From the IMG/VR virus record IMGVR_UViG_3300028840_008185, positions 186,001 through 250,000 of that record: a DNA stretch of 64,000 nt. One strand, 5' to 3'. Shown piece by piece: positions 363-19,691 of the stretch. The stretch's first letter is position 1; every line of letters begins with the position of its first letter. Under the pieces are notes generated by a model, which saw nothing but the letters and a program-made list of their open reading frames with translations, did no database searches and was not told where the DNA came from. The position numbers and the translations under genes are program-made.

Positions 363-364
363 GC

Positions 365-1553: not shown

Positions 1554-1558
1554 TATCT

Positions 1559-1800: not shown

Positions 1801-1830
1801 GGCTCTCCGAGCCCTGAAGCCCGGAGAGCC
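1801..1830 (-). terminator. GC-rich hairpin downstream of 1840..2070, possible terminator or processing site
   Basis: 9-bp inverted repeat ggctctccg/cggagagcc; no clear U-tract. Confidence 0.35.
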
Positions 1831-1839
1831 ACTGTTCCT

Positions 1840-2070: not shown

Positions 2071-2098
2071 TTTGCTTCTCCTTTGCTGTTGGTTGATA

Positions 2099-2524: not shown

Positions 2525-2525
2525 C

Positions 2526-2984: not shown

Positions 2985-2998
2985 GGCTCCTCCTCCTC

Positions 2999-3301: not shown

Positions 3302-3304
3302 TTG

Positions 3305-3463
3305 CTATCTCCTCTTGTCCGTTAGTTTCGGGGGCCACTGGCCAGCCACTCTGTCGTATCCCTGGAAAGGCCACACATCAGCTTCAAGAATGTCCAGAGC
3401 CTCACCCTCCAAGTCCACATCTTTCTCGGGGATAGGGACCAGCTTGTGTTTGGCCTTCTTCAT
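3305..3463 (-). CDS. hypothetical protein (MKKAKHKLVP..., 52 aa; not in ORF track)
   Basis: Hand translation fills the gap between neighbours exactly. Confidence 0.6.
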   Translation of the reverse strand: MKKAKHKLVPIPEKDVDLEGEALDILEADVWPFQGYDRVAGQWPPKLTDKRR

Positions 3464-3466
3464 CTC

Positions 3467-3856
3467 TCAGTCACCGCATTTCGGGCAGGCAGGAGTTATG
3501 TCCGTGAAACCATTGGGCAGTGGGTTATTGGCTCTGGCGACCCAATCACTCACATTCCCATACTTCTCCAACACCTCGGCTGGGGTCATGCACCACTTCG
3601 GGTACCTACAGTCGGAGCAGAGGTAACCGAGCGGTCTGCCGTAGCCAGCAACGATGTCACCGAGAGTGGTGCCGTCTATGAAGGGAAGGATGGCGTCTGG
3701 AAGGCACAAGAACTCTGGGCCATTCTTCACGTAGAGGGAGAGCCCAACCACAACATCCTGAGCCAGATCCTCTTGGTCGTGACCTCTGGTGCCGTACCTA
3801 TCATCGGACAGGATTTGCTGAATCATATCCCTAACGCCGCTTCTTGTGATGAGCAT
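3467..3856 (-). CDS. hypothetical protein with CxxC pairs (CSDC, CPKC)
   Basis: ORF packing; start may be MIQQ at 3826. Confidence 0.7.
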   Translation of the reverse strand: MLITRSGVRDMIQQILSDDRYGTRGHDQEDLAQDVVVGLSLYVKNGPEFLCLPDAILPFIDGTTLGDIVAGYGRPLGYLCSDCRYPKWCMTPAEVLEKYGNVSDWVARANNPLPNGFTDITPACPKCGD

Positions 3857-3859
3857 CTT

Positions 3860-4102
3860 CTACTCCTTGATGTGCATGACGTTGAACATCTGGAACTGCG
3901 GCGGACCCTCACCAACCCAGACGCCATCGAACGGTCGGAGCCAATCCTTCACAGCATCCTCCGTTCCTTCCACCGCGATGTGCTGCCCCGTGATGCGTCG
4001 GTTGCTGTCAGTCACAATGGTCACCTCTTCCCAATCGGCAAGCACCGTAATGTTATCCGGAACGGGAAGCATTTCTGGCATAGCAAGCAAGTGTATTTGC
4101 AT
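3860..4102 (-). CDS. hypothetical protein (MQIHLLAM...)
   Basis: AGGAG SD before ATG 4102. Confidence 0.7.
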   Translation of the reverse strand: MQIHLLAMPEMLPVPDNITVLADWEEVTIVTDSNRRITGQHIAVEGTEDAVKDWLRPFDGVWVGEGPPQFQMFNVMHIKE

Positions 4103-4106
4103 CGTC

Positions 4107-4307
4107 TTAGCTCCTATACCACCACGAGGCATCCACCGTGATTACTCCGTTCTCATCGGGGCCGTTCATCGGGCAGTGCTCAAAGCCACCGTGGAGATCC
4201 ACCAGGGCGTAAGCACGAGTCTTTGCGCCGCCCTTGGTGTCATGTCCATACTCCACTGTCTTCTTTGGTCCCCTGATGAAGACCACCCTGAACGGCTTGT
4301 TGCTCAT
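4107..4307 (-). CDS. hypothetical protein (MSNKPFRVV...)
   Basis: GGAGG SD before ATG 4307. Confidence 0.7.
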   Translation of the reverse strand: MSNKPFRVVFIRGPKKTVEYGHDTKGGAKTRAYALVDLHGGFEHCPMNGPDENGVITVDASWWYRS

Positions 4308-4352
4308 CGTCTTGTCTCCTCCGAAAGCTTCCAGTAGCGACATTTCAATCCC

Positions 4353-4772
4353 CTACTTGTTGTACCAGACTACGTGAGTGAACCGCTCATCCCAGAGCCC
4401 ACCACGGACATCACTTGGATGCACCTTGATGTCGGAGACTTGGAGATCCGTGGCATACTCCCCAAAGCCGTCGTCATCGATGAACATTCCATCGACACAG
4501 TGGCGGGTAAACTCCTCACGGGTCATGTGGTCGCCGTAGTCGGGAATGGACTCCCACTTGATGGGGTCGGGACCAACCTCCACCTTCAAGTTGGTCGCCT
4601 TGAGGAAGAACACAATCTCCTCATCCAGCCGCTTCCACAACTCCAGGGCTGAGGGCACACCACACTCCACCAAGTCCATCACAGACTCGCGCCGCTTCTC
4701 CAGCCACTCCACGGGGTTGATCTCCCCCTCTTTCCAGGTGTCCAGCAGATTCTCACGCAGTCTGTCTTTCAT
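4353..4772 (-). CDS. hypothetical protein (139 aa)
   Basis: ORF, ATGA overlap. Confidence 0.75.
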   Translation of the reverse strand: MKDRLRENLLDTWKEGEINPVEWLEKRRESVMDLVECGVPSALELWKRLDEEIVFFLKATNLKVEVGPDPIKWESIPDYGDHMTREEFTRHCVDGMFIDDDGFGEYATDLQVSDIKVHPSDVRGGLWDERFTHVVWYNK

Positions 4773-4882
4773 TGATCCTCAACCTTTCCCCGACAGGCTT
4801 TCTTGTCGGCTTCTTTCTTTTGGTCCGTATGTCTACCACTTCCGCCGTGCTGAAATGCTGCCACGGCGATATGGTTTCTCAC
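4769..4882 (-). CDS. small basic protein (MRNHIAVAAFQH..., 37 aa; not in ORF track)
   Basis: GTG start, open frame ends in an ATGA overlap with 4353..4772. Confidence 0.5.
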   Translation of the reverse strand: MRNHIAVAAFQHGGSGRHTDQKKEADKKACRGKVEDQ

Positions 4883-4883
4883 G

Positions 4884-5141
4884 TTAGGCTTTCTCTTTCT
4901 CCCACGGCGCTTTCGGCGGCGGTTCCTCTTCTTGGACATCTACCCATCGCTCCTCGTAGTGCTCAATGTCAAACCGCATGTCCCACATTTCAGCGCAACG
5001 CTGACACATCGTCTTGTCGTCACGGATGTAGGCATCGCAGAAAGTCTCAACTCCACAAACCATGCAGGGCTGAAGAGGCTTACGCTGCTTAGCTCGAATC
5101 TGCTCCCGACGCTTCTTGCGGTTGTGCTTGTCCCAAGGCAT
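4884..5141 (-). CDS. basic protein with CxxC zinc ribbon (CMVC...CQRC)
   Basis: Start at MPWD just after upstream stop. Confidence 0.7.
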   Translation of the reverse strand: MPWDKHNRKKRREQIRAKQRKPLQPCMVCGVETFCDAYIRDDKTMCQRCAEMWDMRFDIEHYEERWVDVQEEEPPPKAPWEKEKA

Positions 5142-5142
5142 A

Positions 5143-5304
5143 TTAGCGCAGCTTCTCGCCGTTGAGAGCACGGGCAGCCAGCCTCGCCCTGTCCATCACC
5201 ACGTCAGCCGTATACTCCACGTCGTGGTGATACTGGTCATACGCCGTGTAAGCACCGAACGTTGCCAGAGCCAATACAGTAACCACCAAAAACGTCTTGA
5301 ACAT
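5143..5304 (-). CDS. small membrane-anchored or secreted protein (MFKTFLVVTVLALA...)
   Basis: GAGGAG SD; N-terminal hydrophobic helix. Confidence 0.7.
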   Translation of the reverse strand: MFKTFLVVTVLALATFGAYTAYDQYHHDVEYTADVVMDRARLAARALNGEKLR

Positions 5305-5407
5305 GAGTCTCTCCTCTTGTTGTCTTGGCGCATTGCTCAAGCGCCTTTGGCGCAACCAGCTTGGTCCCAAGACCACCATGCTAGCTGGTTGCTGTGGTGC
5401 GGTGTTG

Positions 5408-5794
5408 CTAGAAACAACTTCGTAGTGCTCCAGTCCCGAAGCACATTGTCCCGTTCGTGTTTGTGTAGACGGTGGAGTTGCTGTCATAGGTCCAGTGGTT
5501 GTAGTCTTTGTCGGTGCCGTATGAAGTGCCATCGTCGTTGTAGGTGCCACTCCACATGCTTCCAGTGTTGAAGTTGTGACCCCTGACTTCGGTCCTGTCG
5601 CTGTACGTGTCCACGTCGTAGAAGTTGCCAGAGTTGTAGTCATACGACGTGCTGTAGAGCGGGGTCGTAGTGGTCGGCACGATGCTGTCACAGCCGATGC
5701 AGGTGGTGCTGAAGCCGTCAAGCCAGTCTGCCTGCACGTTGCCAGCACAGAACACCATTGCCACGAATGCCAGAATTGCCACGATTGCCTTCAT
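5408..5794 (-). CDS. secreted Ser/Thr/Tyr-rich protein
   Basis: Signal peptide MKAIVAILAFVAMVFCAGNVQA; AAGGAG SD. Confidence 0.8.
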   Translation of the reverse strand: MKAIVAILAFVAMVFCAGNVQADWLDGFSTTCIGCDSIVPTTTTPLYSTSYDYNSGNFYDVDTYSDRTEVRGHNFNTGSMWSGTYNDDGTSYGTDKDYNHWTYDSNSTVYTNTNGTMCFGTGALRSCF

Positions 5795-5830
5795 TTGTCT
5801 CTCTCCTTGTTGGTTGTTGACTCCGATATG

Positions 5831-6154
5831 TTACAGCCCCAAACAGGCTGCCGGTAGAATTCCGTTAACTATGTTGCTGCAACTATTATTACGAAGTGCG
5901 TCCAGACATGCATCCCACTCTTCCACTGTAGGCTGGTTTGTCACCATCTGCCCACACTTCCCAGCGTCCATGCAGCAACCACCCATGAACACATTTACGC
6001 ACTCGTCGAAGTTGACAGATGAGTTACACTCCATCACCCGCTGACAAGTTGCCATGCCACTCTCGTAACAGACATCTTGGGCTGTCTCCGGTAGCTCACC
6101 GCCACCACACGCCGAGACTGCGAACACCAGAAGAATTGCTACGATTGCCTTCAT
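5831..6154 (-). CDS. Cys-rich lipoprotein
   Basis: MKAIVAILLVFAVSA-C lipobox; multiple further Cys. Confidence 0.8.
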   Translation of the reverse strand: MKAIVAILLVFAVSACGGGELPETAQDVCYESGMATCQRVMECNSSVNFDECVNVFMGGCCMDAGKCGQMVTNQPTVEEWDACLDALRNNSCSNIVNGILPAACLGL

Positions 6155-6178
6155 CTATCTTCTCCCTGTTTGGGTTGT

Positions 6179-6502
6179 TTAGAACATCCTGATTTCACGG
6201 TTGCCAGACTCATCCACCTCATACACCTTCCAGAAGCCACTTGGGAACACCTCGTAAATTGCGTCGAGAATCTGCTCCCTTGAAGCGTCTACATCCACCT
6301 CAGCCACCTTGTCATCGGGACCGCACATCACTGGACCCAAGTAGACGTTGAAGAACCGCTTGCCAGTCTTAGCCCGAGATGCCGCCATCACATCGTCAGC
6401 CACCACACAACCCTTGGAGTAGGTCACACAACCGGGCTTCACCCAATGACCGTCACCATCCTGCGTGTAACCCTTGGCAATCAACTGGCTTCTCAACGTC
6501 AT
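6179..6502 (-). CDS. hypothetical protein (107 aa)
   Basis: GGAGG SD. Confidence 0.75.
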   Translation of the reverse strand: MTLRSQLIAKGYTQDGDGHWVKPGCVTYSKGCVVADDVMAASRAKTGKRFFNVYLGPVMCGPDDKVAEVDVDASREQILDAIYEVFPSGFWKVYEVDESGNREIRMF

Positions 6503-6505
6503 GGC

Positions 6506-6859
6506 TTACCTCCTCCAATCGGGGTTGATCTCATCACGCAGAGCGTGCCAGTCACCATCCAGCTCCACCAACCGCTCGCACTGTTCTTCCGTGAGCCAGT
6601 TGATGCTGCACTCCCAGGTCACGTCTCCACCCTTGTGGTAGGTGGTGCGAGTCACGAACCGACCGTCGAAGCCCCAGCACACCGTGGTCCGGTTGCCCCA
6701 CACATGGATACGCACCGACTTGTCCATTTCACCAGTGATCCTGCGAACGTCGTTGTTCCAGTAATACTCGACAACCTGGAAGCCCTGCTCTGGTGTGGGC
6801 ATACTGTCGAGAGCCGACTTGAGCGCGTCGATGACTGTGTTGATGGCGTCGTTATCCAT
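6506..6859 (-). CDS. hypothetical protein (117 aa)
   Basis: ORF with SD. Confidence 0.75.
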   Translation of the reverse strand: MDNDAINTVIDALKSALDSMPTPEQGFQVVEYYWNNDVRRITGEMDKSVRIHVWGNRTTVCWGFDGRFVTRTTYHKGGDVTWECSINWLTEEQCERLVELDGDWHALRDEINPDWRR

Positions 6860-6934
6860 GGCACGTAGCTCCGTTTTTGATACGGTGTTTGGTGGAATTT
6901 TTGCTGGTACTTAAGTCAGGATTTGGGTTTCTGG

Positions 6935-7135
6935 CTAGACCTTCTGAAGTCTAGTTCGCCGCAACTTCTTGGGTCGCTTGAACGTCACAATGTAGCAATC
7001 CTCATCGCGGTCCATCTCCACCACTTCCCACCCCTTTGAGCCATAACCATTGAGCCAGTTACGTAGCTTGTGGGTGTCGAGAATGATACGAGACTTGAAC
7101 ATGAACCGCTCTACAGTGTATTCCCACTTGGTCAT
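6935..7135 (-). CDS. DUF4177-like small protein
   Basis: KWEY...LNGYGSKGWEVV...FKR pattern typical of DUF4177. Confidence 0.7.
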   Translation of the reverse strand: MTKWEYTVERFMFKSRIILDTHKLRNWLNGYGSKGWEVVEMDRDEDCYIVTFKRPKKLRRTRLQKV

Positions 7136-7170
7136 TTAGCTCTCCGGTGACACGGTGTTTTGGCAAAAAC

Positions 7171-7316
7171 TGGTCTGGGGTCTGAGCACCCCTGGTCGGC
7201 GCTATTTCCCCAATGATTCCCCAGGTTTCCAGCGCCCCTCCTCGGTTGGGAAACCATAACTACTTGAAACAACAGACCATTCAGGTGGCGCCCAAGTCCA
7301 GGGGACACGGCGCCCA
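7171..7316 (-). ncRNA. candidate structured RNA with H-type pseudoknot
   Basis: Outer stem TGGTCTG/CAGACCA; crossing stems GGTTTCC/GGAAACC and GGCGCT/AGCGCC; extra hairpins; followed by GTTTTT. Confidence 0.5.
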
Positions 7317-7320
7317 TCCC

Positions 7321-7515
7321 TCAGTCCCAAGAGTTGTAGTAAGCGTTGTCCTCACCGTCAGACTCACGCTCCACAACGGGCGGGGAGGAGTGAGTGTTGT
7401 AGAAGTAGTAGTAGCAGAAGTAGTTGTGACACTCCCACATACCACCGATGCTGCACTCCATCCAGACCAGCGGAGTGTCGCACTCACCACAGACCTTGAC
7501 CATCTTCTTGCTCAT
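7321..7515 (-). CDS. small zinc-ribbon protein (MSKKMVKVCGEC...), Tyr-rich C-terminal half
   Basis: AAGGAGGAG SD directly after the mini-tRNA CCA; CGEC, CSIG, CHNYFC. Confidence 0.7.
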   Translation of the reverse strand: MSKKMVKVCGECDTPLVWMECSIGGMWECHNYFCYYYFYNTHSSPPVVERESDGEDNAYYNSWD

Positions 7516-7525
7516 CACTCCTCCT

Positions 7526-7577
7526 TGGTGAACCTTTGTGGACTCGAACCACATACTTCCAAATACAAGTAAGGTTC
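7526..7577 (-). ncRNA. 52-nt minimal tRNA-like RNA lacking an anticodon arm
   Basis: Perfect 7-bp acceptor GAACCTT/AAGGTTC plus A-CCA; hairpin ACTT-GTATTTGG-AAGT; canonical T arm TGTGG-TTCGAGT-CCACA. Confidence 0.8.
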
Positions 7578-7789
7578 ATTACTTAGCCGCCGCTGACTCA
7601 ACCGAAACACGAGGGGTAGATGCCGTTCATGTTGTCTCTCTTGGTGAGGTGGTGGTTGTCAGTCGCGGACCTTTAGGGTGCATTTCAAAGCCCCACTGAC
7701 TCTCCGGGCACCCATCTCCCAGAGCATCTTCTTCTCTCTCCGGTTGCTCCATGTTTACTTCATCTGCTTTTTCCTCCAGTACTGACTCA

Positions 7790-7809
7790 AGGGGCCCCTA
7801 GGGGCCCCT
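7790..7809. repeat. 20-bp perfect palindrome, (AGGGGCCCCT)x2
   Basis: Read directly; lies just past the stop of 7818..8027. Confidence 0.9.
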
Positions 7810-7817
7810 CTTGCTAC

Positions 7818-8027
7818 TTACTTCATCTTCTCCTTGACTTGAGCCAACATCGAGTCCATGGCCAGCGTGTAGACGGCTAACTTCTCGCACATCGCATCCA
7901 CTTCGCTCTTTTGCTCCGATTGCTCTTGCTCTTGGTGCATCAGCCTCCACAACCGCCGCTCACTTGCGTCTCGAACATGATGGTAGCGTGGGGCTGACCT
8001 TCCGCCTCGTGGTCTACACATGGCCAT
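7818..8027 (-). CDS. hypothetical coiled-coil protein (MAMCRPRGG...)
   Basis: GGAGGT SD; start overlaps upstream stop. Confidence 0.65.
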   Translation of the reverse strand: MAMCRPRGGRSAPRYHHVRDASERRLWRLMHQEQEQSEQKSEVDAMCEKLAVYTLAMDSMLAQVKEKMK

Positions 8028-8197
8028 CAGCCCACCTCCAACTTCTTGCCGCGCTCCTTGGCGACATGCAGCGCACCGCGCTGGTCGGTGCCGCGCACCT
8101 TCATCTTCTGCACTGACCCACGACGGCGGGAAGGGGCAAACACCTTGACCTCCACCCACTCACCGTGGACCAGCTTCTTCTCGATACGATAGCTCAT
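8027..8197 (-). CDS. small basic protein (MSYRIEKK...)
   Basis: AGGAGG SD before ATG 8197. Confidence 0.7.
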   Translation of the reverse strand: MSYRIEKKLVHGEWVEVKVFAPSRRRGSVQKMKVRGTDQRGALHVAKERGKKLEVG

Positions 8198-8210
8198 TGT
8201 TCCTCCTGTT

Positions 8211-8429
8211 TTAGAGGTGGCTGAAACCAACGCCGCCGGGACAAATGGTCCGACCGCGCTGCCCAGAAGTAACCCTCTCGATGAGGGCGTTGTAGGTTGA
8301 CTCGGGACAACGAACCTTCCCGTCGTGGTCAACGGGGAGGTAGATGAAGACAGTGTGGTTGACACCACGGCACCAGATGGTAACTGCCGTGAGCCTGTAA
8401 GACAGACGACCCTTCCAAGTCTTACGCAT
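8211..8429 (-). CDS. hypothetical protein (MRKTWKGR...)
   Basis: AAGGAG SD; packing. Confidence 0.65.
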   Translation of the reverse strand: MRKTWKGRLSYRLTAVTIWCRGVNHTVFIYLPVDHDGKVRCPESTYNALIERVTSGQRGRTICPGGVGFSHL

Positions 8430-8430
8430 G

Positions 8431-8703
8431 CTACTCACTCTCCTTCCCCACCCTCAACCAACCCAGCTCATAAGCTCTCTTGGTGAGGTGGACTAGAAGC
8501 CTGGTGTCTCCCTTGGTCGATGCCATGAACTGAGCACGGAGCAAGAGGTGGTAGAAGAACACCAAGTCTTGTGGATACTTACCAGACCTGGTGACCCTTC
8601 TTCTCTGAAGTCCACGCCTCCTACGCCACACTGCATTGCTCAGTGCGTCTCCTACTTCCCACATGAAGGTGGGGTCTTGCACAGACACAGAGAAGGGATA
8701 CAT
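8431..8703 (-). CDS. basic hypothetical protein (MYPFSVSVQ...)
   Basis: AAGGAG SD before ATG 8703; upstream extension in the track is non-coding-like. Confidence 0.7.
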   Translation of the reverse strand: MYPFSVSVQDPTFMWEVGDALSNAVWRRRRGLQRRRVTRSGKYPQDLVFFYHLLLRAQFMASTKGDTRLLVHLTKRAYELGWLRVGKESE

Positions 8704-8724
8704 GACGTTGCTCCTTTGTTGGCC

Positions 8725-8763
8725 TCTCATATACACACGTAGTATATACGTGTGCATATGAGA
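8725..8763 (-). repeat. 17-bp hairpin (one G-U pair on the minus strand), 5-nt loop
   Basis: tctcatat-a-cacacgta / tacgtgtg-c-atatgaga. Confidence 0.8.
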
Positions 8764-8800
8764 AGGGGCTCTGTAGGAGCCCTTGTGAGGAGGGGAGTGT

Positions 8801-9007
8801 TTAGCTGTTGTTGAGGATGGTGAGGGCGAAGTCCCTGGCCTGACCCAGCTCCTTGGCCTTGGGGTCGTTGGGGTCGATGATGCCGGTGGCGTTGGTGAGT
8901 GCAGCGTCGAGGCGCTGCAAGGCCACCTTGGCGAGGGGGGTGTTGAGGTTGTTGAGGCGGGGGTAGAGGGCCTGCACTGCCTTGCGGATGTTGTGCAACA
9001 TTGACAT
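8801..9007 (-). CDS. small helical protein (MSMLHNIRK..., 68 aa), first gene of the high-GC block
   Basis: CAGGAG SD before ATG 9007; strong codon bias. Confidence 0.8.
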   Translation of the reverse strand: MSMLHNIRKAVQALYPRLNNLNTPLAKVALQRLDAALTNATGIIDPNDPKAKELGQARDFALTILNNS

Positions 9008-9748: not shown

Positions 9749-12442
9749 TTATAGATTATCCTCGTAGTAATGTAGCTCTCCTATCTCCTCTTCCGTATGA
9801 GGCTCTTTGGTTATATTCTCGTTGATTGTTTCGATTAAGATTCTTATAGCCGGGGCTAGGGATTTCAGTTCATTTAGGTCATATGTCTCAATATCTATCT
9901 GAGTCTGCGGGAAGCCCGCATATATGTCTTGCTTGGCGTATCGCTTTAGAGGTGCTGGGGTTTCTATAGGCTTTTGACAAATAATAAATACCTCCTTCTC
10001 GCGCCCTCTTGATTGGGCTCCGAAGGTCGCCTTGATTCCGATGTTCGCACTTACATCGGAATTCCTGTAGTTTGTGATGTCCCAGCCTTGGAACATCTCT
10101 TTGGGAAACAGTTCAGTTAAATCTGGATCATAGGGCTTCCCTATTGGGACGACGTTTGATGTATCTCCACCCCTTTGGTCCGTTAAATTCATACTCTCCG
10201 CAAAGCCTCCTATCGTAGTAATAATAGGAGCTATTTTCTCGACATCTTTGGGAAAATCGAAATGAAGCGTATAAGTATTCCTATCTATATCCACCTTGAG
10301 ACCTAGGTTAAAATCTCCTATCTGCGATGGCCATGAAAGATGTCCTGCGGGTAATCGGTCTTTTGTCGCATCTATAGAGAAGTATCCATTATTGAAATTA
10401 TTTTGCTTCGGGAAAGAGACCCAAGCCATGAAGTATGCTCCATATAATTCTCCCTCGCGCCCAGTTTTCTCCTGCTCTCTTCCCTCCATAGAGGTCCAAC
10501 CACCGAAAACTGTTATAGACAGTTCGGGAAAGAACTTTTCCAATATCTCTTTTGGCTGGCCATATAGCTTTGCCCGCTTAGATATAGAGAATGTTTGGCT
10601 TTCAAGCTTAATCGCTTGAGCTTTGGCCCCGATGTTCTTTATGACCTGAATAGGCTCCGTGAAGTTTCCACCCACGGGTATGTTATACTGTGATGTTTCA
10701 TCCTGGTTGAATAACTCAAAGAATATGTTGTATGAGACTGGCTTACCTTCGTGGTGGATGAGCATAATTTTAAGATAAATATTTAGTTTTTTACTTCCCG
10801 CTCGTATAACAGTATCTTCATACTTCAGAGTATCCCAACCCTTAAAGATTTCTGGTGGAAACACCTCTTTCATTTCTGGAGGCGCTGGGTCTTTGTCTCC
10901 CTCTTCCTTCTTTAGAGTGAACTCAGCAATCAAATCATGAATCTGTGGGAGTTGTTCTTCGAATTCACCTTTGCTCAGGTTTTCCACCTCAGCGCCGCGA
11001 TATTCATTTGTAAATCCCCAGCGCACTTCTACACCCTCTTTGCCGCTTGGATGAACTTCTTCTGGCCATCCCATAGCCCAGGAGATTTTATCTTGTTCTT
11101 TATCTACACGCAGAAAAACTTCTCCCTGGTGAAACCTCAGATAGGCTTCTATCTCATTGGGTTCATACTTAGTAACAAACCATTGCGGCTTATCACCTCG
11201 CATGGTGCCAAAAACATGGGCTGGGAAGTATTTTCTTAGGTCTACCTCCTGAGCCCGCTTAGATATAGGTAATGATTGATTTCCTATCAACTCTAGCTCT
11301 TCTTCTGGGTATTGCTGCTTTGCTTCTTCGGCAAGATCATTTCCGCTGTCGATTGCCTGTTTGATAGGCTCAATTAGTTTGTCGAACTCTCCCATAGTTT
11401 TTGCTATAACCATTTCGTTGAACACTGGGTCCATCTTCGGCATGTTTAGTTGGATGTGAACCCCGCCGTATGTTAGGCGAATATCCACTGAGTAGTAAGG
11501 TTCAGTTGGATTAGGCGTGAGCGGTGGTAAGTGAGCCTTTATAATGTCTACGTCATAGTTTTCTATTATGAAATTCTTGAATAAGTTCTTTGGGAATAGC
11601 TCCGTGAAGTTTATGTTTTGGACCGCTCCAGTAGGTCTTGGCTTCTGGTATTCTGTTATGCCCCTTTGCTTTAGACTCTTCAGTGTTTCTGCATCTACTC
11701 CAACACTTTCAATAATTTCAAGAATTTTGGGCAGCTTCTCCTTTATCTCCTCGTTTTCCAGCCATATTTTTAGAGGCTTTCCTATCAAGCCGGTATTGAA
11801 GTCTCCTAGCTCTGGATCCCATTTTAAATCCAGTGTCATTTGTTTTCTTCCGCCTTTAAAATGATGTAGTTCTAATCTTATCCTTGGCTCCCACTTTATT
11901 CCTGGAATATGCACGTAGGCTTCAAAGGCGTCTGTCTCCCACGAAGAGCCTCCGCCATATTTTAAAGCTTGAATGTTCCAACCGCCGAAATATCCTGGCG
12001 GAATGAAAGGGAAGTGTTTTCTTAATACCTCCGCTGCTTCGTGTCTCTCTTCCTCTTTCCAGCTTGATCTCTTGGAAATCCTAGGCGTTATTTCTTTAAT
12101 AGTTTCCTGATCTTTCTCGGGAAGCTTCTTGAAGAGCCTGTCTTTAATCACGAAATCTATGTTCTTTTTCGCATCGACAACTTTACCTTTATAATCATAA
12201 TCTTTCTCTAATTGAGACGCAGTTGGATCAAATATGTTTCCCTTCTTATCCTCCGCCCAGAAGTGTGCGGTGTCTTCCTTGTGCTTGCCTTTGCCTTTGT
12301 GTGGCGGCTTGCCTTTCATAAGTTTAAGTTCAGGGAACAGCAGAGACATGGCGGCAGCATAGAAGAAACAATTCCCATGATGCTTCGCCCTCACATTTTC
12401 CTTCATCCATTTCAGGATAGGCTGCCGCTTAGATAGTTTCAT
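9749..12442 (-). CDS. 897-aa modular (poly)protein: N-terminal Cys-His-Asp (transglutaminase/papain-like) domain plus three repeated two-domain cassettes separated by ISKR[AS]
   Basis: GNCF...HFW...DPTASQ; motifs at aa 3, 122, 393, 620; six FP..F.GW-type repeats. Confidence 0.85.
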   Translation of the reverse strand: MKLSKRQPILKWMKENVRAKHHGNCFFYAAAMSLLFPELKLMKGKPPHKGKGKHKEDTAHFWAEDKKGNIFDPTASQLEKDYDYKGKVVDAKKNIDFVIKDRLFKKLPEKDQETIKEITPRISKRSSWKEEERHEAAEVLRKHFPFIPPGYFGGWNIQALKYGGGSSWETDAFEAYVHIPGIKWEPRIRLELHHFKGGRKQMTLDLKWDPELGDFNTGLIGKPLKIWLENEEIKEKLPKILEIIESVGVDAETLKSLKQRGITEYQKPRPTGAVQNINFTELFPKNLFKNFIIENYDVDIIKAHLPPLTPNPTEPYYSVDIRLTYGGVHIQLNMPKMDPVFNEMVIAKTMGEFDKLIEPIKQAIDSGNDLAEEAKQQYPEEELELIGNQSLPISKRAQEVDLRKYFPAHVFGTMRGDKPQWFVTKYEPNEIEAYLRFHQGEVFLRVDKEQDKISWAMGWPEEVHPSGKEGVEVRWGFTNEYRGAEVENLSKGEFEEQLPQIHDLIAEFTLKKEEGDKDPAPPEMKEVFPPEIFKGWDTLKYEDTVIRAGSKKLNIYLKIMLIHHEGKPVSYNIFFELFNQDETSQYNIPVGGNFTEPIQVIKNIGAKAQAIKLESQTFSISKRAKLYGQPKEILEKFFPELSITVFGGWTSMEGREQEKTGREGELYGAYFMAWVSFPKQNNFNNGYFSIDATKDRLPAGHLSWPSQIGDFNLGLKVDIDRNTYTLHFDFPKDVEKIAPIITTIGGFAESMNLTDQRGGDTSNVVPIGKPYDPDLTELFPKEMFQGWDITNYRNSDVSANIGIKATFGAQSRGREKEVFIICQKPIETPAPLKRYAKQDIYAGFPQTQIDIETYDLNELKSLAPAIRILIETINENITKEPHTEEEIGELHYYEDNL

Positions 12443-12732
12443 TCCAGTTCCTCGCTTTTATCTTCCAGCTTGGCAAGTTTTGTTTCAATGTATCGCATAA
12501 CATTCTCTATGCGGGTTCTCGCCAGCACTGAAAAATCGTCATCTCCTGATAACTCTTCAAGAATATCACCAAGTTCGTAGGACACAAGCTTTTTCAGTTC
12601 TGTTAAAAGCCCTCTACGTTCCGCAATTCTTTGATACTTAGAGGAACGGTGAAGAAGATCATATCTTTCTTCGCTCTCCTGTAATTTTTGCAGCAAATCT
12701 TCTTCTTCTGCGGCACGCTTAGATAGTTTCAT
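12439..12732 (-). CDS. small helical protein starting MKLSKRAA
   Basis: ATGA overlaps on both sides; shared N-terminal motif. Confidence 0.85.
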   Translation of the reverse strand: MKLSKRAAEEEDLLQKLQESEERYDLLHRSSKYQRIAERRGLLTELKKLVSYELGDILEELSGDDDFSVLARTRIENVMRYIETKLAKLEDKSEELE

Positions 12733-14741
12733 CTCGCAACCTCTGTTAAAAACTTATTCACTGCATCTCTATATCTCTTCTCCCAGACGCCCATTGGTTT
12801 GGCCTTGAGTTCATTATAGCGACCAACGGCATCTTTCCGCTCAAGATCTGTCTTCTCATATTCCCAGATCAAACGCCGCTTATCTTCTTCTTCACTTGCT
12901 TTTTCTATTTCTTTACGCCTTAAATCCTGAGCATAATCCAGAGCCCCTATGTATTTAAGCAGTTGATTTATTTCTTCAAGCTCTTCGTCCATCTTGGCTC
13001 TCAGGCTCACAAAGAAATGATTTGGCCAAACCCTTGTGGACAATCCCACCTCGGGCATATCTGGCGCTTGTATGAAATATGGTTTGTTCTGCCCGCCGCT
13101 AACGTAATAGGGTGGAGCAGCCATAAAAGCTTTGAGAGCTTCATTTCTTGGGCGCTCATTTCCCCAACGTTCAGGAAACTTTTGATGAAATCTTCTTTTC
13201 CATGCATCAGCAACAGTCCCTATGTTAGAATGATACTCTATATCTCTTAGAGCATGCGGCAATCTGGTCTTCTCCAGTTGCTTCCACTTTTCCTCCACCA
13301 ATGTCTTTCTTTCTTCGGAGGTTGGAGCCCGTCTTATTACCTCATCCCATTGCTTTATATCTTCTGTTTTATAGCCATGAGGTCCATAGCCAGGAGTTTC
13401 TGTTGTTGGGAGCCCTGCTGGTCTGCTCCAGCGATCCTCTTCCGCCCAGTCTTTTTTCGGAAGCTTTCTCGGCAGCTTTTTGCCCCAGCTAATCAAGGTT
13501 TGGACTAGGTGGCGCATCTCGTGCTCGGTAGTTGATTTAAGCTTCTTCCTAAACTTCTCGTATTCATTTGGATCTTTTGGATGTAAAAACTTCTTGGGCA
13601 CAAAAATTCTAAGATTTCGTAGATGGTCATCCCACTCGCCTAGTGGATCTTCTGCTCTCTGTGGTTCCATGCTCACTATAATCTTTACAGGGACTAAGAC
13701 CTGAGGAAGATTGTATTTTTCCCAGCCAGCATAGTCTATAGGTATTGTTGTGTTTTCATAACCCACAAAGACATTTCCCTTCTCATACTTTTCCTCTGGC
13801 GTAGGCTTCTTTTCATATCCTTCATCATCATACCTAAGATCATCTAGCTTAGCGTTTTGAAGAGATTTGCGTCTCATTATTAGATAATCTGGAAGGTCTT
13901 CATCCCACAGAGGCTCTCCCTTCTCGAAAAATTTAGAGGTCTTGTCGGACAACATGTGCAACGCATCTTTGAGCGTCATTTTTGTTTCAAACTTAGGATA
14001 ATCCGCAAAGCCCCAAACCTTTTGAAAAGCTTTACTTTCTGCGTTGGGAATGTATACGTCTTCTATTGGGCCACTGACTTTGGAGACGCCTCTTGGAAGG
14101 GTCACATACAACGTTTTGTATTCATCTACCGCCCCAAGCAGTTCGGGATTCATTATAGGAATTTTGAAATCTTTAAACAATCCGCTGGTCAAGAAAAGCT
14201 CAACCTCTTCTTTAAGAGTCTTTGCGTTATAAATCTTTGGCAACAAATCGTCTATTTTATCTTGAATTTCATCGACTTGGTTCTCAACAGCCTTATATTG
14301 TTTCTGCGTTATTCTTGGTTTCATAATGTCGATGAGTGCCCAACGAGCGTAGTTCTTTTCAACCCACGCCCAAACCTTTTCGGTTTCAGGCGGCAGAGGT
14401 ATAACTGCCGCTTCCTTCTTCATTTTACCTCTGTGCGACAGGTCAATCAACGGCTTAATGTGAATTACCTGGACCTTATCTTTCGGGTCTAATTTCACGA
14501 AATCTTTCATTTTAGCCACTTGTTTGGGCACATGCTTATGTAAATCCTTGAACTTTGTGGTTATTATGGTATTAACCCTAACCTTAAAGCCCCAGTCTTT
14601 TCCTGAATAAGACTGAGCATCATACTCTCTTCCCTTTCTATACTTGCCCATCTCCTTTCCAATACGCACAGTTAGATTCTTCTTGCCCGAAAGCAATTTG
14701 TTCTTATACTGTGATGGGAAGGGCATTACATTCTTTTTCAT
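12729..14741 (-). CDS. 670-aa protein: N-terminal ASCH/PUA-like domain plus HExxH zincin-like region
   Basis: FPSQYKNKLLSGKKNLTVR (ASCH-like); HEMRH at 13509-13523 and a downstream RDIEYH. Confidence 0.75.
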   Translation of the reverse strand: MKKNVMPFPSQYKNKLLSGKKNLTVRIGKEMGKYRKGREYDAQSYSGKDWGFKVRVNTIITTKFKDLHKHVPKQVAKMKDFVKLDPKDKVQVIHIKPLIDLSHRGKMKKEAAVIPLPPETEKVWAWVEKNYARWALIDIMKPRITQKQYKAVENQVDEIQDKIDDLLPKIYNAKTLKEEVELFLTSGLFKDFKIPIMNPELLGAVDEYKTLYVTLPRGVSKVSGPIEDVYIPNAESKAFQKVWGFADYPKFETKMTLKDALHMLSDKTSKFFEKGEPLWDEDLPDYLIMRRKSLQNAKLDDLRYDDEGYEKKPTPEEKYEKGNVFVGYENTTIPIDYAGWEKYNLPQVLVPVKIIVSMEPQRAEDPLGEWDDHLRNLRIFVPKKFLHPKDPNEYEKFRKKLKSTTEHEMRHLVQTLISWGKKLPRKLPKKDWAEEDRWSRPAGLPTTETPGYGPHGYKTEDIKQWDEVIRRAPTSEERKTLVEEKWKQLEKTRLPHALRDIEYHSNIGTVADAWKRRFHQKFPERWGNERPRNEALKAFMAAPPYYVSGGQNKPYFIQAPDMPEVGLSTRVWPNHFFVSLRAKMDEELEEINQLLKYIGALDYAQDLRRKEIEKASEEEDKRRLIWEYEKTDLERKDAVGRYNELKAKPMGVWEKRYRDAVNKFLTEVAR

Positions 14742-14742
14742 A

Positions 14743-15180
14743 TCATTCCTCTGAGTAAGCTAGAACATTCACGGGGAGGTTACTAACATATTCCAACCAC
14801 TTATAGATTTTGCTCAGTAGCATTGGAAAATACTTCATACTCATCCTTGGAAGATCTACAACGTAGTATCTGTCTTTCTTGCCAGCAGGTTTGGCCATTT
14901 TTCCAAAATATACATCTCCAAGCTCGCTTGGCCATACCATCTTTAGTCTGAATGATTTCCCATCTCCTTCTAGCTCAAGAGTAGCAGATAGATATTCATC
15001 CTCTTTCGCGCCCGCAACTGGCCAGAAGGTTGTCTCCAGTGTTATGAATTCACGCTCGGCAGGCTTTCCCTCAGTGGGACCAAACCATTTGAATGGGAAG
15101 TTCTTTATCTTATCCGGAGTGAAATATCTGAATATGCTCCCCTTATCAGCCTCTTCGTGCTTCTTCCTGAATTCGCTCAT
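14743..15180 (-). CDS. hypothetical protein with WPSxLGD domain paralogous to polyprotein segments
   Basis: LKMVWPSELGDVYFG. Confidence 0.8.
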   Translation of the reverse strand: MSEFRKKHEEADKGSIFRYFTPDKIKNFPFKWFGPTEGKPAEREFITLETTFWPVAGAKEDEYLSATLELEGDGKSFRLKMVWPSELGDVYFGKMAKPAGKKDRYYVVDLPRMSMKYFPMLLSKIYKWLEYVSNLPVNVLAYSEE

Positions 15181-18100
15181 CTCGCGTCTCTCTTCTCGAA
15201 CTCATGCAAATCTATTAGTTGCTTTTCAGTCAAGCCTCTTTTCTGTTGCTCTTCGTAATCTTGGGGATACTCAAGAGGGAAAACCTCAGCTTCCTCTCCC
15301 TTTTCTTCCGGCGGCGTCACCTTCTCTGTTGGAAACTCAATCACCTTGGCGGCTCGTCTGGAAAGCTGAAACCCATCACTTATCTCTTCCAAATATTCTC
15401 CCGGCAGCGTGCCACTTTTAATTGTCACAAACGCATGAGGGGTGCCCTGAAATAGAAGGCGGGGGCTCGTGCGTTTGAATCCCTTGGCTTTACTAAGCTC
15501 TTCGAGAAGGGAGCCTTGCTCTACTTCGCGCTGGCTCCGTGGCTTTTCCTCTACAATACTAACACCTTCAATCAGTCCATCCGCTAGAGCACGGCTGTAA
15601 TCAACTGCATACAGCTTTCTGCGCTTTGCGAATGCTTGTTGTTCAGGATCATCTTGTGGTCCTATTGGCCGTAACAATAACGAAACCACACGAGAACCAC
15701 CAGGGCCTCGTAGCTTTTCAAGAGCTTCAATAATTTCTTCTGTAGTTAGAGATTCGGCTTCTTTTCCAAGCTCTTCTGCCGCCCTTCCACGATATTTTTC
15801 TAATACTTCAGGCATATGAGACAAACTAGCGGGAGTCTTCAAGCCCTCTTTTATTAGATCTACTCCTGAGGGTCCGTAGTGATATAGCATAGTGGGCACA
15901 GCGGCTCGTTTAGATATAGCAAAAGAACCCTCGGACTTCATCTTTTTTGATAGGGCGCCTATCTTGCTAATAACTGGCAACAATTTCCTCAAGACACCAT
16001 CAAGCTCGCTATAAGATCCTTCTTTAGCGAATATCATTGTGGGCCCGTCTTCTATGGCATCAAGCTCCATATCCCCAAGTTTAGATGGCCAGTGCAACTC
16101 TAAGCGGTAATCGCCTTCTCTTATGGGTGCGTCCGGTTCCAATACCTTGGAGCGCAGCTTTATGGTGAGTAAGAACCAGCCGTATGCGACCTTGGGCATA
16201 AATTCTTCCTCATAGTGCGTTGGAATATCTGGGAAGCTGGTGCTTAACTCAAGCGTGTATCGAGGGTAACCAGTCTCGGAGTAATCATCAGCCTGAACAT
16301 CCCAACCCTCTATTTTGCTTGGTGGAATTAGCAGCCTGAACTCTCTTTCGTAGACATCATCCTCACCCGCCCTTTTTGATAAAGGGATGCCACCTCCTCC
16401 TCCAGCAAACTTCTCCATCACCATTCTCTTAGCCACATCTTTCGTAAGCTCTTTGCCTTCCTCAGCCAACCCATCCTGAAGCTCAAGCAGATACTTTCCA
16501 ACCTGACCGATGATTGGCCCAGGTTTTACATCAAGGATTTCCATAATTTCTTTGCCGTTAAGTATGGGTTTCCTGGCCACGGGAATCTCTTTGGTCTGCT
16601 CGATGCGCTTTCTTAGTTCTGGGATGTAGTTGCTGGGAGGCATGTTCCCTAGAGCATCGGCCTCCGCAAGATCCAGCACATCATCAACCATGCCTTCGCC
16701 CACGTCGCGCACGAACTTCCTAAGAGCTTTTGGCGAGGCTTTTTCAAGGGAGTGTGGGCGCATGTGGTTCTCGACCATGGATTTCACGCGCTGTATAGTT
16801 TTTCCGTCAAACTTGAGTCTGCGCAAGATGGCCTCAGCAATTTCTGCGCCCGCTTTCTCATGGCCCAAGAACTGAATCTTGTCGCCTATGAACTCTTGGG
16901 TCTCAGGTTTGCCGATGTCGTGGAGTAGGGCAGCCAGCTGCCCGTGAATCGTAGGTGGGGCGTTCGAGAGGACTAATAGAGTGTGCTTATAGACATCTCC
17001 TTCCTGGTGGCTGCGCTTGTCGTGCTTGACACCAATGAGCCCATAGATTTCGGGAAGGACTAAGGGAAGGAGGTTGGTCGCTTTCATTATTTTAATGGCC
17101 TGGGCGGTTTTGCCAAGCTTCATTACTTTTGTGAGTTCTTCTTGTATGCGTTCCCAAGAGATTTTCTGTATCTCTTCGGCGTTTCTCCTGACTGATCTGA
17201 GCATAAACATAGGAATCTTCCAGTCATATTTACATTGGAAGCGAATAAGACGAAGCATGCGCAGTGGGTCATTAGAGAACATCGTGTCGGGATTCACAGC
17301 CGGGTGGCCTCTTAGAATGCCCTTTTCTATATCCTCTTTGCTTGTGCCCGTCAGGTCTTCTATTTCGCCCGATGTGAGGTCTCTGAGCAGCATGTTCACC
17401 GTGAAGTCTCTACGCTCGATGTCATCCTTGAGAGGCGCGTAAACCGTCTCACGCTGCCTTGAGGAGGGATCGGGGTAGTGTTCCTTCTGCGTGTCCGCAA
17501 TATCGATTTCAGCGCCTGTCGTAGCATATCGCTGGCCCTCATAAGTTATATCATCCTTGAAGGCGACGTGCCAGATTGGGTAGGCTGCTCCTAGCTGGCG
17601 AGGGGTTGAGGTCTGCTCGGGGAAACTGTCAGCTATAAACTTGCAGAGGGCTTCAGCCCCGCCACGCATTTCCACAACTATGTCGAGGTCTTTGGACTCC
17701 ATGCCCATCAGCTTGTCTCGCTCGTAGCCTCCTACGGAGAAGGCTTTACCGGCGAAAGGGGTGCCCGGTAGTATCCGGAGTAGAAGTCTTTGAACCTCCT
17801 CCTCCGCGAGCGCAGCTCGCTTTGACAGTTTGACATCACTGGCTGGCTGATCTGCTTTCGCACCGGCTCGTTGCTCCGCCCACCTTATTAGACCATCCAT
17901 GGATCTGGCTGCACTTTCAGCACTCATACCTATAACTGTGCCAGCCTCCTCGGGAACTTTGTATAGAAAGTCTTCTTCTGGATAGTTTCTACCCATACCG
18001 GCGAAGGCTCTATTATCCAAATCCATGGGGTCGCCGGATGGTCTTTCATTTTTTTCGTAGATCGCATATGGCGGCGGCTCAAATCCAGGCTCACTAACTT

Positions 18101-19691
18101 CACTAATTATCATAACTGCCTGCGCAAAATACTCACGCTCATCAATATACACCTGCTGCATATTGGCGTTAAGGAAGTTTATCAACTCAGCTTTTACAGC
18201 CGAATTTTTTATTTGTGGCCAGATGTTTGTAAGTCGGTCACTCACCAATTGGAACAACACAGAATCAGGATCGCCATCAGCAAAATCTTCCGTCAGGCCA
18301 ACTGCCGCATCATCCGCATGGTCAAGCTCTCTGAACCGCCCCAGCCCATGACCGAAAGCAGCCAGCAAATACCATACGGGGGCCTCTTCTTCTACTGGTT
18401 CAGGAGACTCCTCTTTTGGCACCTCAGGAGCCACCGGCTCCTCTGGCGGCGCTTCTCTCTTCTTATGCATCTCCCACATCTCTTCTTCTGGAATAGGCTT
18501 AAGCGGCGTGCCAGCGCCGGGAGGAAGCTTATAGCTCTTCCACTGACCTGGCTGCTGTGTTTCGTAAGGTTCAAACCACTTAATGGCTCGCTTCGAGATA
18601 GGAAAAGATTGAGAGGCAACCTTACCCTTCGTGGTGTAGGATGTTTCCAATCCGGGAACAAGGTATTGATTCTTGAGAGTTCCAGCTTCGTGGCCTACGA
18701 TCTTAGCTGTGTTCTCCAGAGCTTCTTTGAACTCTTCTTTGAGTTTCTTTTCCTTTTCTTTTTGCTCCTTTGGAAGACTTCCCTTTCTCACCTTCTTAAG
18801 CTCTTTGCGCATCTCTTCATTGGCATGAAAACCCCTAATATCTTTGGCGGTGATATCAAATGGCTTCAAATAGGCATTAACAGTATTGTCCGTAATGTAA
18901 TAATTATCTCCCTTGAAGATCGTATCATTATCTTTCTTGCCACTCACCATTTCCCTGAGAACGGGAATGATGCTTTTGTTAGTGATCTTCTTATCTTGTT
19001 CTACGCCAGATTTTCCGGTGTATTTAATCACGGCTGTTCCACCAGTAAATTTTATATGTTTCTTCAGCCAGGTGGTCACGCCGTAATGCTTCATATCCTC
19101 GGCAGAATATCTGTTCCCAACTCTCTCGTATGTATCGTCAATGAGAGCTACAGCCAGAGCGTTATATTTTGTCTTGATGTCGCTAGACTTGAGATCCTTG
19201 CCCACTTCCTTTCTAACTTTGGTAATATTTTTGGACAGCTTGTCCAACTTCTTGGCCTTCTTTTCGTCGCGCTCCTTGACATGCTTTTCGGTGTAAATAT
19301 ATGTAATGTTTCCACTTTCTTCTTTCTTTTTCTCGACGTATTCTGCGGCTCGTTTAGACAAAGGAATCCTCTGCGGAATGCCGCTAAGCTCTTGGAATTC
19401 TTCATAATCTACAAGGATTTCTGTATTGGCGGGAATGTCTCGACTAGCGGCTAAGGCATAGCCTTTCTTGGTGGAAATGGCCAAGGCATTGGGGTCTTTG
19501 GAATGATTGAGGTATTTTCCTATGTCCGTTCTGGAATAGGCAGAATCAGTATCTTTGGCCCCTTTCAACTTCTTCATGATGAGGCCAACTACATCACCCT
19601 TCTTAATTTTTTCTTTAGAAAACACGCCTTTGCCGTGAATCTGTGATTTCTTGATTTCTACGGGAAGATCACGCACCGATATTGCTGCCAT
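15177..19691 (-). CDS. 1504-aa multi-enzyme polyprotein (SET, topoisomerase IB, unknown, CCA-adding/HD, unknown, ART-like, tail)
   Basis: Uninterrupted ORF; six [IL]S[KR]RA motifs at the domain boundaries. Confidence 0.92.
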   Translation of the reverse strand: MAAISVRDLPVEIKKSQIHGKGVFSKEKIKKGDVVGLIMKKLKGAKDTDSAYSRTDIGKYLNHSKDPNALAISTKKGYALAASRDIPANTEILVDYEEFQELSGIPQRIPLSKRAAEYVEKKKEESGNITYIYTEKHVKERDEKKAKKLDKLSKNITKVRKEVGKDLKSSDIKTKYNALAVALIDDTYERVGNRYSAEDMKHYGVTTWLKKHIKFTGGTAVIKYTGKSGVEQDKKITNKSIIPVLREMVSGKKDNDTIFKGDNYYITDNTVNAYLKPFDITAKDIRGFHANEEMRKELKKVRKGSLPKEQKEKEKKLKEEFKEALENTAKIVGHEAGTLKNQYLVPGLETSYTTKGKVASQSFPISKRAIKWFEPYETQQPGQWKSYKLPPGAGTPLKPIPEEEMWEMHKKREAPPEEPVAPEVPKEESPEPVEEEAPVWYLLAAFGHGLGRFRELDHADDAAVGLTEDFADGDPDSVLFQLVSDRLTNIWPQIKNSAVKAELINFLNANMQQVYIDEREYFAQAVMIISEVSEPGFEPPPYAIYEKNERPSGDPMDLDNRAFAGMGRNYPEEDFLYKVPEEAGTVIGMSAESAARSMDGLIRWAEQRAGAKADQPASDVKLSKRAALAEEEVQRLLLRILPGTPFAGKAFSVGGYERDKLMGMESKDLDIVVEMRGGAEALCKFIADSFPEQTSTPRQLGAAYPIWHVAFKDDITYEGQRYATTGAEIDIADTQKEHYPDPSSRQRETVYAPLKDDIERRDFTVNMLLRDLTSGEIEDLTGTSKEDIEKGILRGHPAVNPDTMFSNDPLRMLRLIRFQCKYDWKIPMFMLRSVRRNAEEIQKISWERIQEELTKVMKLGKTAQAIKIMKATNLLPLVLPEIYGLIGVKHDKRSHQEGDVYKHTLLVLSNAPPTIHGQLAALLHDIGKPETQEFIGDKIQFLGHEKAGAEIAEAILRRLKFDGKTIQRVKSMVENHMRPHSLEKASPKALRKFVRDVGEGMVDDVLDLAEADALGNMPPSNYIPELRKRIEQTKEIPVARKPILNGKEIMEILDVKPGPIIGQVGKYLLELQDGLAEEGKELTKDVAKRMVMEKFAGGGGGIPLSKRAGEDDVYEREFRLLIPPSKIEGWDVQADDYSETGYPRYTLELSTSFPDIPTHYEEEFMPKVAYGWFLLTIKLRSKVLEPDAPIREGDYRLELHWPSKLGDMELDAIEDGPTMIFAKEGSYSELDGVLRKLLPVISKIGALSKKMKSEGSFAISKRAAVPTMLYHYGPSGVDLIKEGLKTPASLSHMPEVLEKYRGRAAEELGKEAESLTTEEIIEALEKLRGPGGSRVVSLLLRPIGPQDDPEQQAFAKRRKLYAVDYSRALADGLIEGVSIVEEKPRSQREVEQGSLLEELSKAKGFKRTSPRLLFQGTPHAFVTIKSGTLPGEYLEEISDGFQLSRRAAKVIEFPTEKVTPPEEKGEEAEVFPLEYPQDYEEQQKRGLTEKQLIDLHEFEKRDAR
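15366..15902 (-). other. probable ADP-ribosyltransferase-fold (Tpt1/KptA-like) domain (segment 6)
   Basis: LYHYGPSG...IKEGLKTP at the start and GTLPGEYLEEI at the end resemble YHGT...GL.P and IP.EYI patterns. Confidence 0.45.
16383..17813 (-). other. cca: class II tRNA nucleotidyltransferase (CCA-adding/poly(A) polymerase family) with HD domain (segment 4)
   Basis: VGGYERD...KDLDIVV, RRDFTVN, DPLRMLRLIRF, SWERIQEEL, LLHDIGKP. Confidence 0.92.
18600..19346 (-). other. DNA topoisomerase IB catalytic domain (segment 2)
   Basis: RVGN, GKSG, KDIRG, VGH, KNQYL catalytic residues as in bacterial/viral TopIB. Confidence 0.9.
19362..19691 (-). other. SET domain (polyprotein segment 1)
   Basis: SQIHGKGVF...YLNHSKDPN...RDIPANTEILVDY: GxG, NHS and ExxxDY SET motifs. 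Confidence 0.9.

Follow-up and report, generated by a model that had tools for sequence, protein, structure and literature searches.

We analyzed a window of 64,000 nucleotides, bases 186001–250000 of the 318-kb IMG/VR virus record IMGVR_UViG_3300028840_008185 (translation table 11 throughout), whose minus strand encodes an 897-amino-acid (aa) polyprotein that opens with a small Cys-His-Asp domain. This domain is a divergent subfamily of the YunG-like superfamily, and comparisons of its predicted structure support a transglutaminase/papain-type core. It is bounded on both sides, like every other cargo unit, by a short punctuation motif (a hydrophobic residue followed by Ser-Lys-Arg and then Ala or Ser; hereafter SKR sites, with a slash marking the putative cut after Arg). 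As to its role, we put at about even the chance that the domain is cargo, a thiol hydrolase or amidase from the YunG-like superfamily that another protease cuts out of the polyprotein and so releases; catalysis, cleavage at the SKR sites, packaging into the phage head and the identity of the cutter are all points that we infer.

With sites on either side of it, the domain most likely ends up as a free thiol enzyme. In the course of events that we propose, residues 7–121 would be excised at the flanking SKR sites to give a protein of ∼13–14 kDa, whose chemistry would be acyl transfer or hydrolysis (as a peptidase, amidase or deamidase) and whose target would belong to the host or the phage; the nucleic-acid enzymes with which it travels (topoisomerase IB, CCA-adding enzyme, ASCH and SET) would be at work beside it. 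The sites would be cut by another protease, for which the first candidate is the head-maturation protease of the phage and the second a neighboring HExxH module.

The 897-aa Polyprotein and Its First Unit

The features of the polyprotein gene are as follows, in window coordinates and with the basis of each assignment in brackets.

9749–12442, minus strand: 897-aa polyprotein made up of the Cys domain and three paralogous modules, each ∼230–270 aa long (translation; module paralogy by BLASTP)
12425–12442, minus strand: MKLSKR, putative six-residue N-terminal propeptide ending in a punctuation site (the same six residues open the adjacent 97-aa open reading frame, ORF)
12080–12424, minus strand: YunG-like Cys-His-Asp domain, residues 7–121 (translation, relatives, AlphaFold2 model, YunG link)
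12368–12370, minus strand: codon of Cys25 (GNCF), predicted nucleophile and first residue of helix 25–35 (conservation, model)
12263–12265, minus strand: codon of His60 (HFW), first residue of strand 60–64 (conservation; hhalign with the canonical YunG His)
12227–12229, minus strand: codon of Asp72 (DPTASQ) (conservation; aligned to the canonical YunG Asp)
12065–12079, minus strand: ISKR/S site closing the domain unit, residues 122–126 (PRISKR/S at 120–126), in a region of low model confidence (predicted local distance difference test, pLDDT, of 59)
11252–11266, minus strand: ISKR/A site, residues 393–397
10571–10585, minus strand: ISKR/A site, residues 620–624

The domain thus fills the interval from the N-terminal MKLSKR to the first ISKR of the protein, and translation puts Cys25, His60 and Asp72 exactly where the first-pass annotation of this DNA had located them. 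Downstream of it, the three paralogous modules (residues 126–396, 397–623 and 624–897; window 9749–12064) are each bounded by a site and have no Pfam or PHROG match. They weakly match one unit (residues 1108–1262) of the 1504-aa protein encoded nearby. A search of IMG/VR with the whole 897-aa protein found no locus, and a search with the domain alignment found one.

Family Conservation and Kinship to YunG

Relatives of the domain were defined as matches at E ≤ 1e-3 in an exhaustive HMMER search over 1.84 billion proteins, which returned 80 (38 of them at E ≤ 1e-10); the alignment used below, A1, holds 66 sequences. Only four columns are conserved at ≥90%, namely Cys25 (71 of 74 aligned sequences), Gly44 (78/80), His60 (78/80) and Asp72 (80/80), the last being the only invariant column of A1. 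Since Cys25, His60 and Asp72 are among the best-conserved positions, the three residues named in the first-pass annotation constitute a family signature, and the Cys-His-Asp domain that it had proposed is borne out as an arrangement conserved in the family and not a product of chance. The subfamily is further marked by the motifs W-I-x-x-N-V, N-C-F-F-Y-A, D-T-A-H-F-W and D-P-T, and by a C-terminal helical extension.

Direct searches with the domain returned little. Residues 1–130 of the 897-aa protein had no match in Pfam or PHROGs, phmmer and profile hmmsearch gave no meaningful match among PDB sequences, megablast and tblastn found nothing in the phage collection, a word-index protein search returned only the query, and a search of BFVD yielded only unnamed viral proteins.

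Profile comparisons through the relatives lead to YunG. The Pfam family PF24585 (YunG) matches 27 of the 66 relatives, with a best E of 4.7e-7, and the same genome encodes a canonical, stand-alone YunG of 114 residues (G000:7035-7379; 30.7 bits to PF24585). A hidden Markov model built from A1 finds this canonical protein with an E of 7.3e-7 across the Cys-to-Asp stretch, and hhalign of A1 against it gives a probability of 95.3% and an E of 2.3e-8 over the His-Asp stretch, with both the His and the Asp aligned. Shape comparisons point the same way: its nearest neighbors in the Atlas are YunG-bearing clusters, among them a viral one that is 47% YunG, with template modeling (TM) scores of 0.57/0.56, and another with 31% YunG (TM 0.67). 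One Atlas cluster joins the YunG-like fold to Peptidase_S78_2. At the same time, the window domain (residues 1–130) has no PF24585 match at E ≤ 1 and so misses the curated cut-off of 27 bits, while the second YunG family, PF24591 (Phage_YunG-like), has no match anywhere in the genome at E ≤ 10 and appears only as a feature-level neighbor, at 0.91. Because profiles and shapes link the domain to YunG, yet the Pfam thresholds of both YunG families are missed, we assign it to a divergent subfamily of the superfamily.

Predicted Fold

Structure prediction, which the first-pass annotation had suggested as a check, was run with AlphaFold2 on the 66-sequence alignment and gave a model with a pLDDT of 89.6 and a predicted TM score of 0.83, with Cys25, His60 and Asp72 placed as in the transglutaminase/papain fold. 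In the model, a helix at 25–35 begins at Cys25, a strand at 60–64 begins at His60, and Asp72 follows just after. Taken together with conservation, the model therefore has the order Cys, His, Asp with the Cys at the N-terminus of a helix and the His and Asp in a later strand region. When the model was compared with 48,161 chains using VIA-align, more than 30 of the top 50 were Cys enzymes of the transglutaminase/papain fold, among them TglA, the pseudomurein isopeptidases PeiW/PeiP, LapG, protein glutaminases, transglutaminases and arylamine N-acetyltransferases, as well as SpvD, SseI, OspI, MepS and staphopain. No Pfam family of the transglutaminase/papain clan was matched by the domain or its relatives. 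The fold class is assigned because the hit list agrees with the geometry of the triad, not on account of any single score. The earlier claim of a transglutaminase/papain-like fold is thus supported by the AlphaFold2 model and the neighbor list, and tempered by modest alignment scores and the lack of any sequence or profile match to solved members.

The chemistries of transglutaminase-fold enzymes differ (protease, deamidase, acyltransferase), so that the fold does not fix the reaction. One could suppose that the domain is non-catalytic, its conserved residues being structural or metal-binding, as in a packaging or docking module, and our literature search did find no activity for any YunG-like protein. 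We consider this extremely improbable, as a Cys that opens a helix, and a His and an Asp in the strand region after it, are among the four best-conserved positions, an arrangement that is canonical for the fold.

The presence of PeiW, PeiP, MepS and other NlpC/P60 enzymes among the structural neighbors raises a different prospect, that of a cell-wall hydrolase, an endopeptidase of the NlpC/P60, CHAP or PeiW type, which would leave the virion together with the DNA and make a local opening in the wall; virion-borne lysins are common in phages. Yet the recurrent partners of the domain are nucleic-acid enzymes rather than wall-binding domains, no signal peptide or wall-binding module was seen when the relatives were read by eye, and the stand-alone members of the family are small; such a role is, in our judgment, very improbable.

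The SKR Punctuation and the Neighboring Polyproteins

The proteins encoded by the 318-kb record contain nine instances of the pattern [IL]SKR[AS], and all nine fall in three adjacent genes, those of the 897-, 97- and 1504-aa proteins; chance would be expected to give about 0.46 occurrences genome-wide and 0.012 within these three genes. The punctuation is real. Across this phage and its relatives we collected 37 sites in 15 proteins, with the consensus Pro-(Leu/Ile/Phe)-Ser-Lys-Arg-Ala, running from P5 to P1'. We read the SKR sites as putative cleavage sites. The genes upstream of the 897-aa polyprotein gene are the following.

12439–12732, minus strand: 97-aa charged protein starting MKLSKR/A
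12729–14741, minus strand: 670-aa protein that is ASCH-like at its N-terminus and carries an HExxH module (HEMRH, residues 407–411, nucleotides 13509–13523), a rival candidate protease
14743–15180, minus strand: 145-aa ORF between the 670-aa and 1504-aa genes, with motifs that by eye resemble part of the modules of the 897-aa protein
15177–19691, minus strand: 1504-aa polyprotein with SET, topoisomerase IB, an unknown unit, a CCA-adding enzyme with HD, and further units

The 145-aa ORF gave no BLASTP match to the modules of the 897-aa protein at E ≤ 0.01. In the 1504-aa protein, five [IL]SKR/A sites and one LSRR/A site lie between the units, at least three of which are unknown. The sites may vary between close relatives: P0083, an orthologue of the 670-aa protein, has LSKR/A between the ASCH-like part and the HExxH module, and the window copy is without a site there, so that a punctuation site has been lost or gained between the two. 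Three relatives (P0009, P0019 and the protein at L007:8229-9632) have a pair of sites after the Cys domain, spaced by 16 residues: first LSGR or LSKR, next a spacer that is conserved, and finally SKR/A. Cutting at both sites would free a short conserved peptide.

The same partners of the domain recur, with or without sites: topoisomerase IB, CCA-adding enzyme, ASCH, SET, 2H and NUDIX domains. Relatives are fused to inorganic-pyrophosphatase-like, NUDIX and 2H domains, and at locus L003 the Cys domain is fused to a CCA-adding enzyme without an SKR site. The genome carries a second, stand-alone CCA-adding enzyme (G000:104047-105456), so that both this enzyme and YunG exist as stand-alone proteins beside their polyprotein copies, which suggests that the units in the polyproteins are duplicates meant for delivery.

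Cargo Enzyme or Processing Protease

A canonical SKR site is present in only seven of the 80 relatives. It is found in 1 of the 45 that are small, stand-alone proteins (≤180 aa) and in 6 of the 21 of ≥300 aa; loci L003, L006 and L010 have the domain and no site, and multidomain relatives show no conserved sequence after the domain. The first-pass annotation had proposed that the domain is an autoprocessing protease for the gene cluster. With 73 of the 80 relatives lacking sites, with these three loci unpunctuated, with the unit itself flanked by sites, and with other proteases present, that proposal finds no support here, although nothing refutes it. Its alternative, a deamidase or cross-linking effector, fares better in its general sense, in that an effector fits the data more closely, while no specific chemistry can be assigned.

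The self-processing idea deserves to be set out in full. The Cys domain would be the SKR/A protease itself, freeing itself from the polyprotein and then cutting the 897-, 97- and 1504-aa proteins, and two further SKR-bearing proteins of 500 and 3474 aa described below, in trans. It has a conserved Cys-His-Asp triad and a fold that includes real proteases (LapG, PeiW/PeiP, staphopain); a site lies 5–20 residues after the domain in P0001, P0002, P0003, P0009, P0019 and the L007 protein; and the domain is present at each SKR-bearing locus whose length allowed a judgment (the window, L001, L007 and L014). All of these loci, however, were reached through the domain and belong to related phages (those at L007 and L014 being syntenic with the window), so that the co-occurrence of domain and sites is not independent. 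Besides the 73 relatives without sites, several multidomain relatives are unpunctuated, removal in cis of a six-residue N-terminal propeptide appears sterically unlikely, and the known transglutaminase-fold proteases favor small residues at P1, not Lys-Arg. We regard this explanation as possible, if unlikely. The broader proposition that the YunG-like domain is a dedicated hydrophobic-S-K-R/A protease, a new class of processing cysteine protease whose substrates in trans would be five or more cargo proteins from a widespread clade of huge phages, we hold to be unlikely.

If the domain is cargo, the cutter must be sought elsewhere, and one place to look is the adjacent 670-aa protein, whose HExxH module could be the processing enzyme. 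Five copies of this module all keep the residues H, E, H and Q and, downstream of them, D-x-E-x-x-x-N. Relatives with SKR punctuation contain the module as well (twice in P0009, once in the L007 protein), and in P0083 it comes just after the LSKR/A site. Zincin-like metallopeptidases have, moreover, been proposed as the processors of polyvalent proteins (PMC5512222), and Atlas searches gave weak leads to SprT-like and LPD23 families. Those leads lie within the tool's chance range, the module has no Pfam or PHROG match, its fold model is poor (pLDDT 50.8), and it could be one more cargo unit; we therefore rate it a quite improbable processing enzyme.

The head-maturation protease is our first candidate for the cutter of a cargo domain. 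No match to Peptidase_S77, Peptidase_S78, Peptidase_S78_2 or Terminase_6C was found in the 318-kb record, and the head module was reached by a stepwise walk along a 452-kb contig. There, a 1367-aa protein (L045:5650-9753) matches head-maturation proteases over its first ∼260 residues (phrog_18299, E 1.8e-13), this protease domain being fused to a long, acidic, repeat-rich tail. It is encoded beside further SKR-bearing proteins. Just upstream, a 500-aa protein of the tyrosine phosphatase family (L045:3014-4516) has a short propeptide ending in FSKR/A, and ∼6 kb upstream a 3474-aa protein (L046:1-9623) has two LSKR/A sites. The visible start of the 3474-aa protein resembles, by eye, the end of a DNA ligase domain.

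A further papain-like candidate protease is encoded in the window itself.

21973–22380, minus strand: 135-aa protein of the Peptidase_C39 family (Pfam 28.9 bits, cut-off 22)

Orthologues of this gene are syntenic in the related loci L007 and L014.

Several observations weigh against reading the domain as cargo released by another protease. In most SKR-bearing relatives (P0002, P0003, P0009, P0019 and L007) the domain directly precedes a site, as a protease acting in cis would. No canonical site was found in the head-module proteins that we read, among them the major capsid protein, the one bearing the protease and those of two large ORFs that lie between these. The LIKR/A stretch of the capsid protein was considered as a head-protease site and set aside as ambiguous: its counterpart in Bacillus phage G reads LISKA, in a capsid protein whose first residue lies just three positions ahead of the aligned stretch. 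As regards the fold, the VIA-align Z scores are modest (5.6 to 3.3), each below the tool's caution line of 8, and Foldseek of the domain against the PDB returned nothing at E ≤ 0.001.

Source Genome and Setting

The 318-kb record is part of metagenome contigs of about 452.6 kb. It is labeled "provirus," with a completeness estimate of 79%, and the trimming behind this label looks wrong, with the head module falling outside the record. Almost all of its genes are on the minus strand; it carries 40 tRNA genes and a contractile-tail module, along with genes for replication and nucleotide metabolism. The major capsid protein (343 aa, phrog_2522, L045:18809-19840) lies beyond the end of the record, on the 452-kb contig, and has 1725 homologues at E ≤ 1e-10, with identities of 80–100% among the matches listed (n = 120). 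It shares 52–54% identity with gp27 of Bacillus phage G, the nearest cultured relative. The number of homologues and the identity to gp27 place this uncultured phage in a widespread clade of huge myoviruses.

Some features of this genome lie apart from the polyproteins. Just downstream of the 897-aa gene, window positions 1–9000 have a G+C content of 52–59%, vs. 39–45% in the polyprotein cluster; the ORFs there look doubtful, and neither a tRNA gene nor an Rfam match occurs in the region. Two further matches lie outside the window, a weak one to PhuZ-like tubulin (G000:251932-253386) and a strong one to an adenylosuccinate-synthetase-like PHROG that includes PurZ-type enzymes (G000:50580-51884). 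Many small genes of the phage clade, near the C39 gene and the head genes, start with Met-Lys-(Val/Leu)-(Leu/Ile/Val)-Asn-(Ser/Thr), a start that could represent either a paralogous family or another recurrent signature at the N-terminus. Genes with this start are:

19961–20329, 21759–21971 and 23032–23331 of the window, minus strand
L043:7016-7255 and L043:8739-8948
about ten genes in L014

Significance and Comparison With Known Systems

YunG-like proteins are a sizeable, mostly phage-borne and functionally uncharacterized group, and our literature search found no paper on YunG function. The present analysis supplies a testable triad and a fold class for them, and places one YunG-like subfamily inside punctuated cargo polyproteins. 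Identifying the SKR cutter would show how a DNA phage uses polyproteins to deliver a topoisomerase IB, a SET methyltransferase and a CCA-adding enzyme. Should the Cys domain prove to be that cutter, it would be a new protease family and give the YunG superfamily its first function; should it prove to be cargo, it would be a new candidate host-takeover effector.

Like the domain described here, members of the YunG families (PF24585, PF24591) have ∼110 residues and the order Cys, His-aromatic-Trp, Asp, and the predicted shapes nearest to the domain are YunG clusters, mostly viral. The domain differs from them in its own signature, in its C-terminal helical extension and in being embedded in a polyprotein. 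With LapG, PeiW/PeiP, protein glutaminase, the arylamine N-acetyltransferases and OspI/SseI, it shares the Cys at a helix start and the Cys-His-Asp order, and we take the spacing of its three residues (35 and 12 residues) to be similar to that in LapG and the arylamine N-acetyltransferases. In contrast to these transglutaminase-fold enzymes, it is much smaller, aligns with Z scores of only 3.3–5.6, and has no sequence or profile match to solved structures.

Leader papain-like proteases of RNA viruses resemble the present arrangement in having an N-terminal Cys/His domain with a cleavage site soon after it. The differences are that no homology was detected, that the phage family is mostly stand-alone or in fusions that look uncut, and that the phage unit also has a site on its N-terminal side.

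A further comparison is with other DNA phages. The internal proteins and Alt of T4 and the ejection proteins of phiKZ and SPN3US are packaged in the head, carry short propeptides or internal sites with one motif, and are cut by the prohead protease; in T4, capsid-targeting sequences are removed by gp21. Here, too, there are short propeptides ending in a shared motif (MKLSKR twice) and cargo genes beside the head protease gene. The prohead proteases of T4, phiKZ and SPN3US cut after Glu, however, whereas the P1 residue here would be Arg, the capsid protein is without a canonical site, and packaging is a prediction from gene position.

Our search of the literature on phage polyproteins found nothing relevant beyond the polyvalent proteins of phages and conjugative elements, for which processing and delivery with the DNA have been predicted, with zincin-like metallopeptidases proposed as the processors (Iyer, Burroughs, Anand, de Souza and Aravind, 2017; PMC5512222). 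As in those proteins, many unrelated effector domains are carried on single phage polypeptides, partly beside virion genes and with an HExxH module; in this phage the 1504-aa protein combines SET, topoisomerase IB and CCA-HD units, and the 897-aa protein the Cys domain and three modules. A text search of the paper (PMC5512222) returned no mention of papain- or transglutaminase-like domains, YunG or a short punctuation motif. Unlike the polyvalent proteins, the polyproteins described here have their units separated by a strict hydrophobic-S-K-R/A motif.

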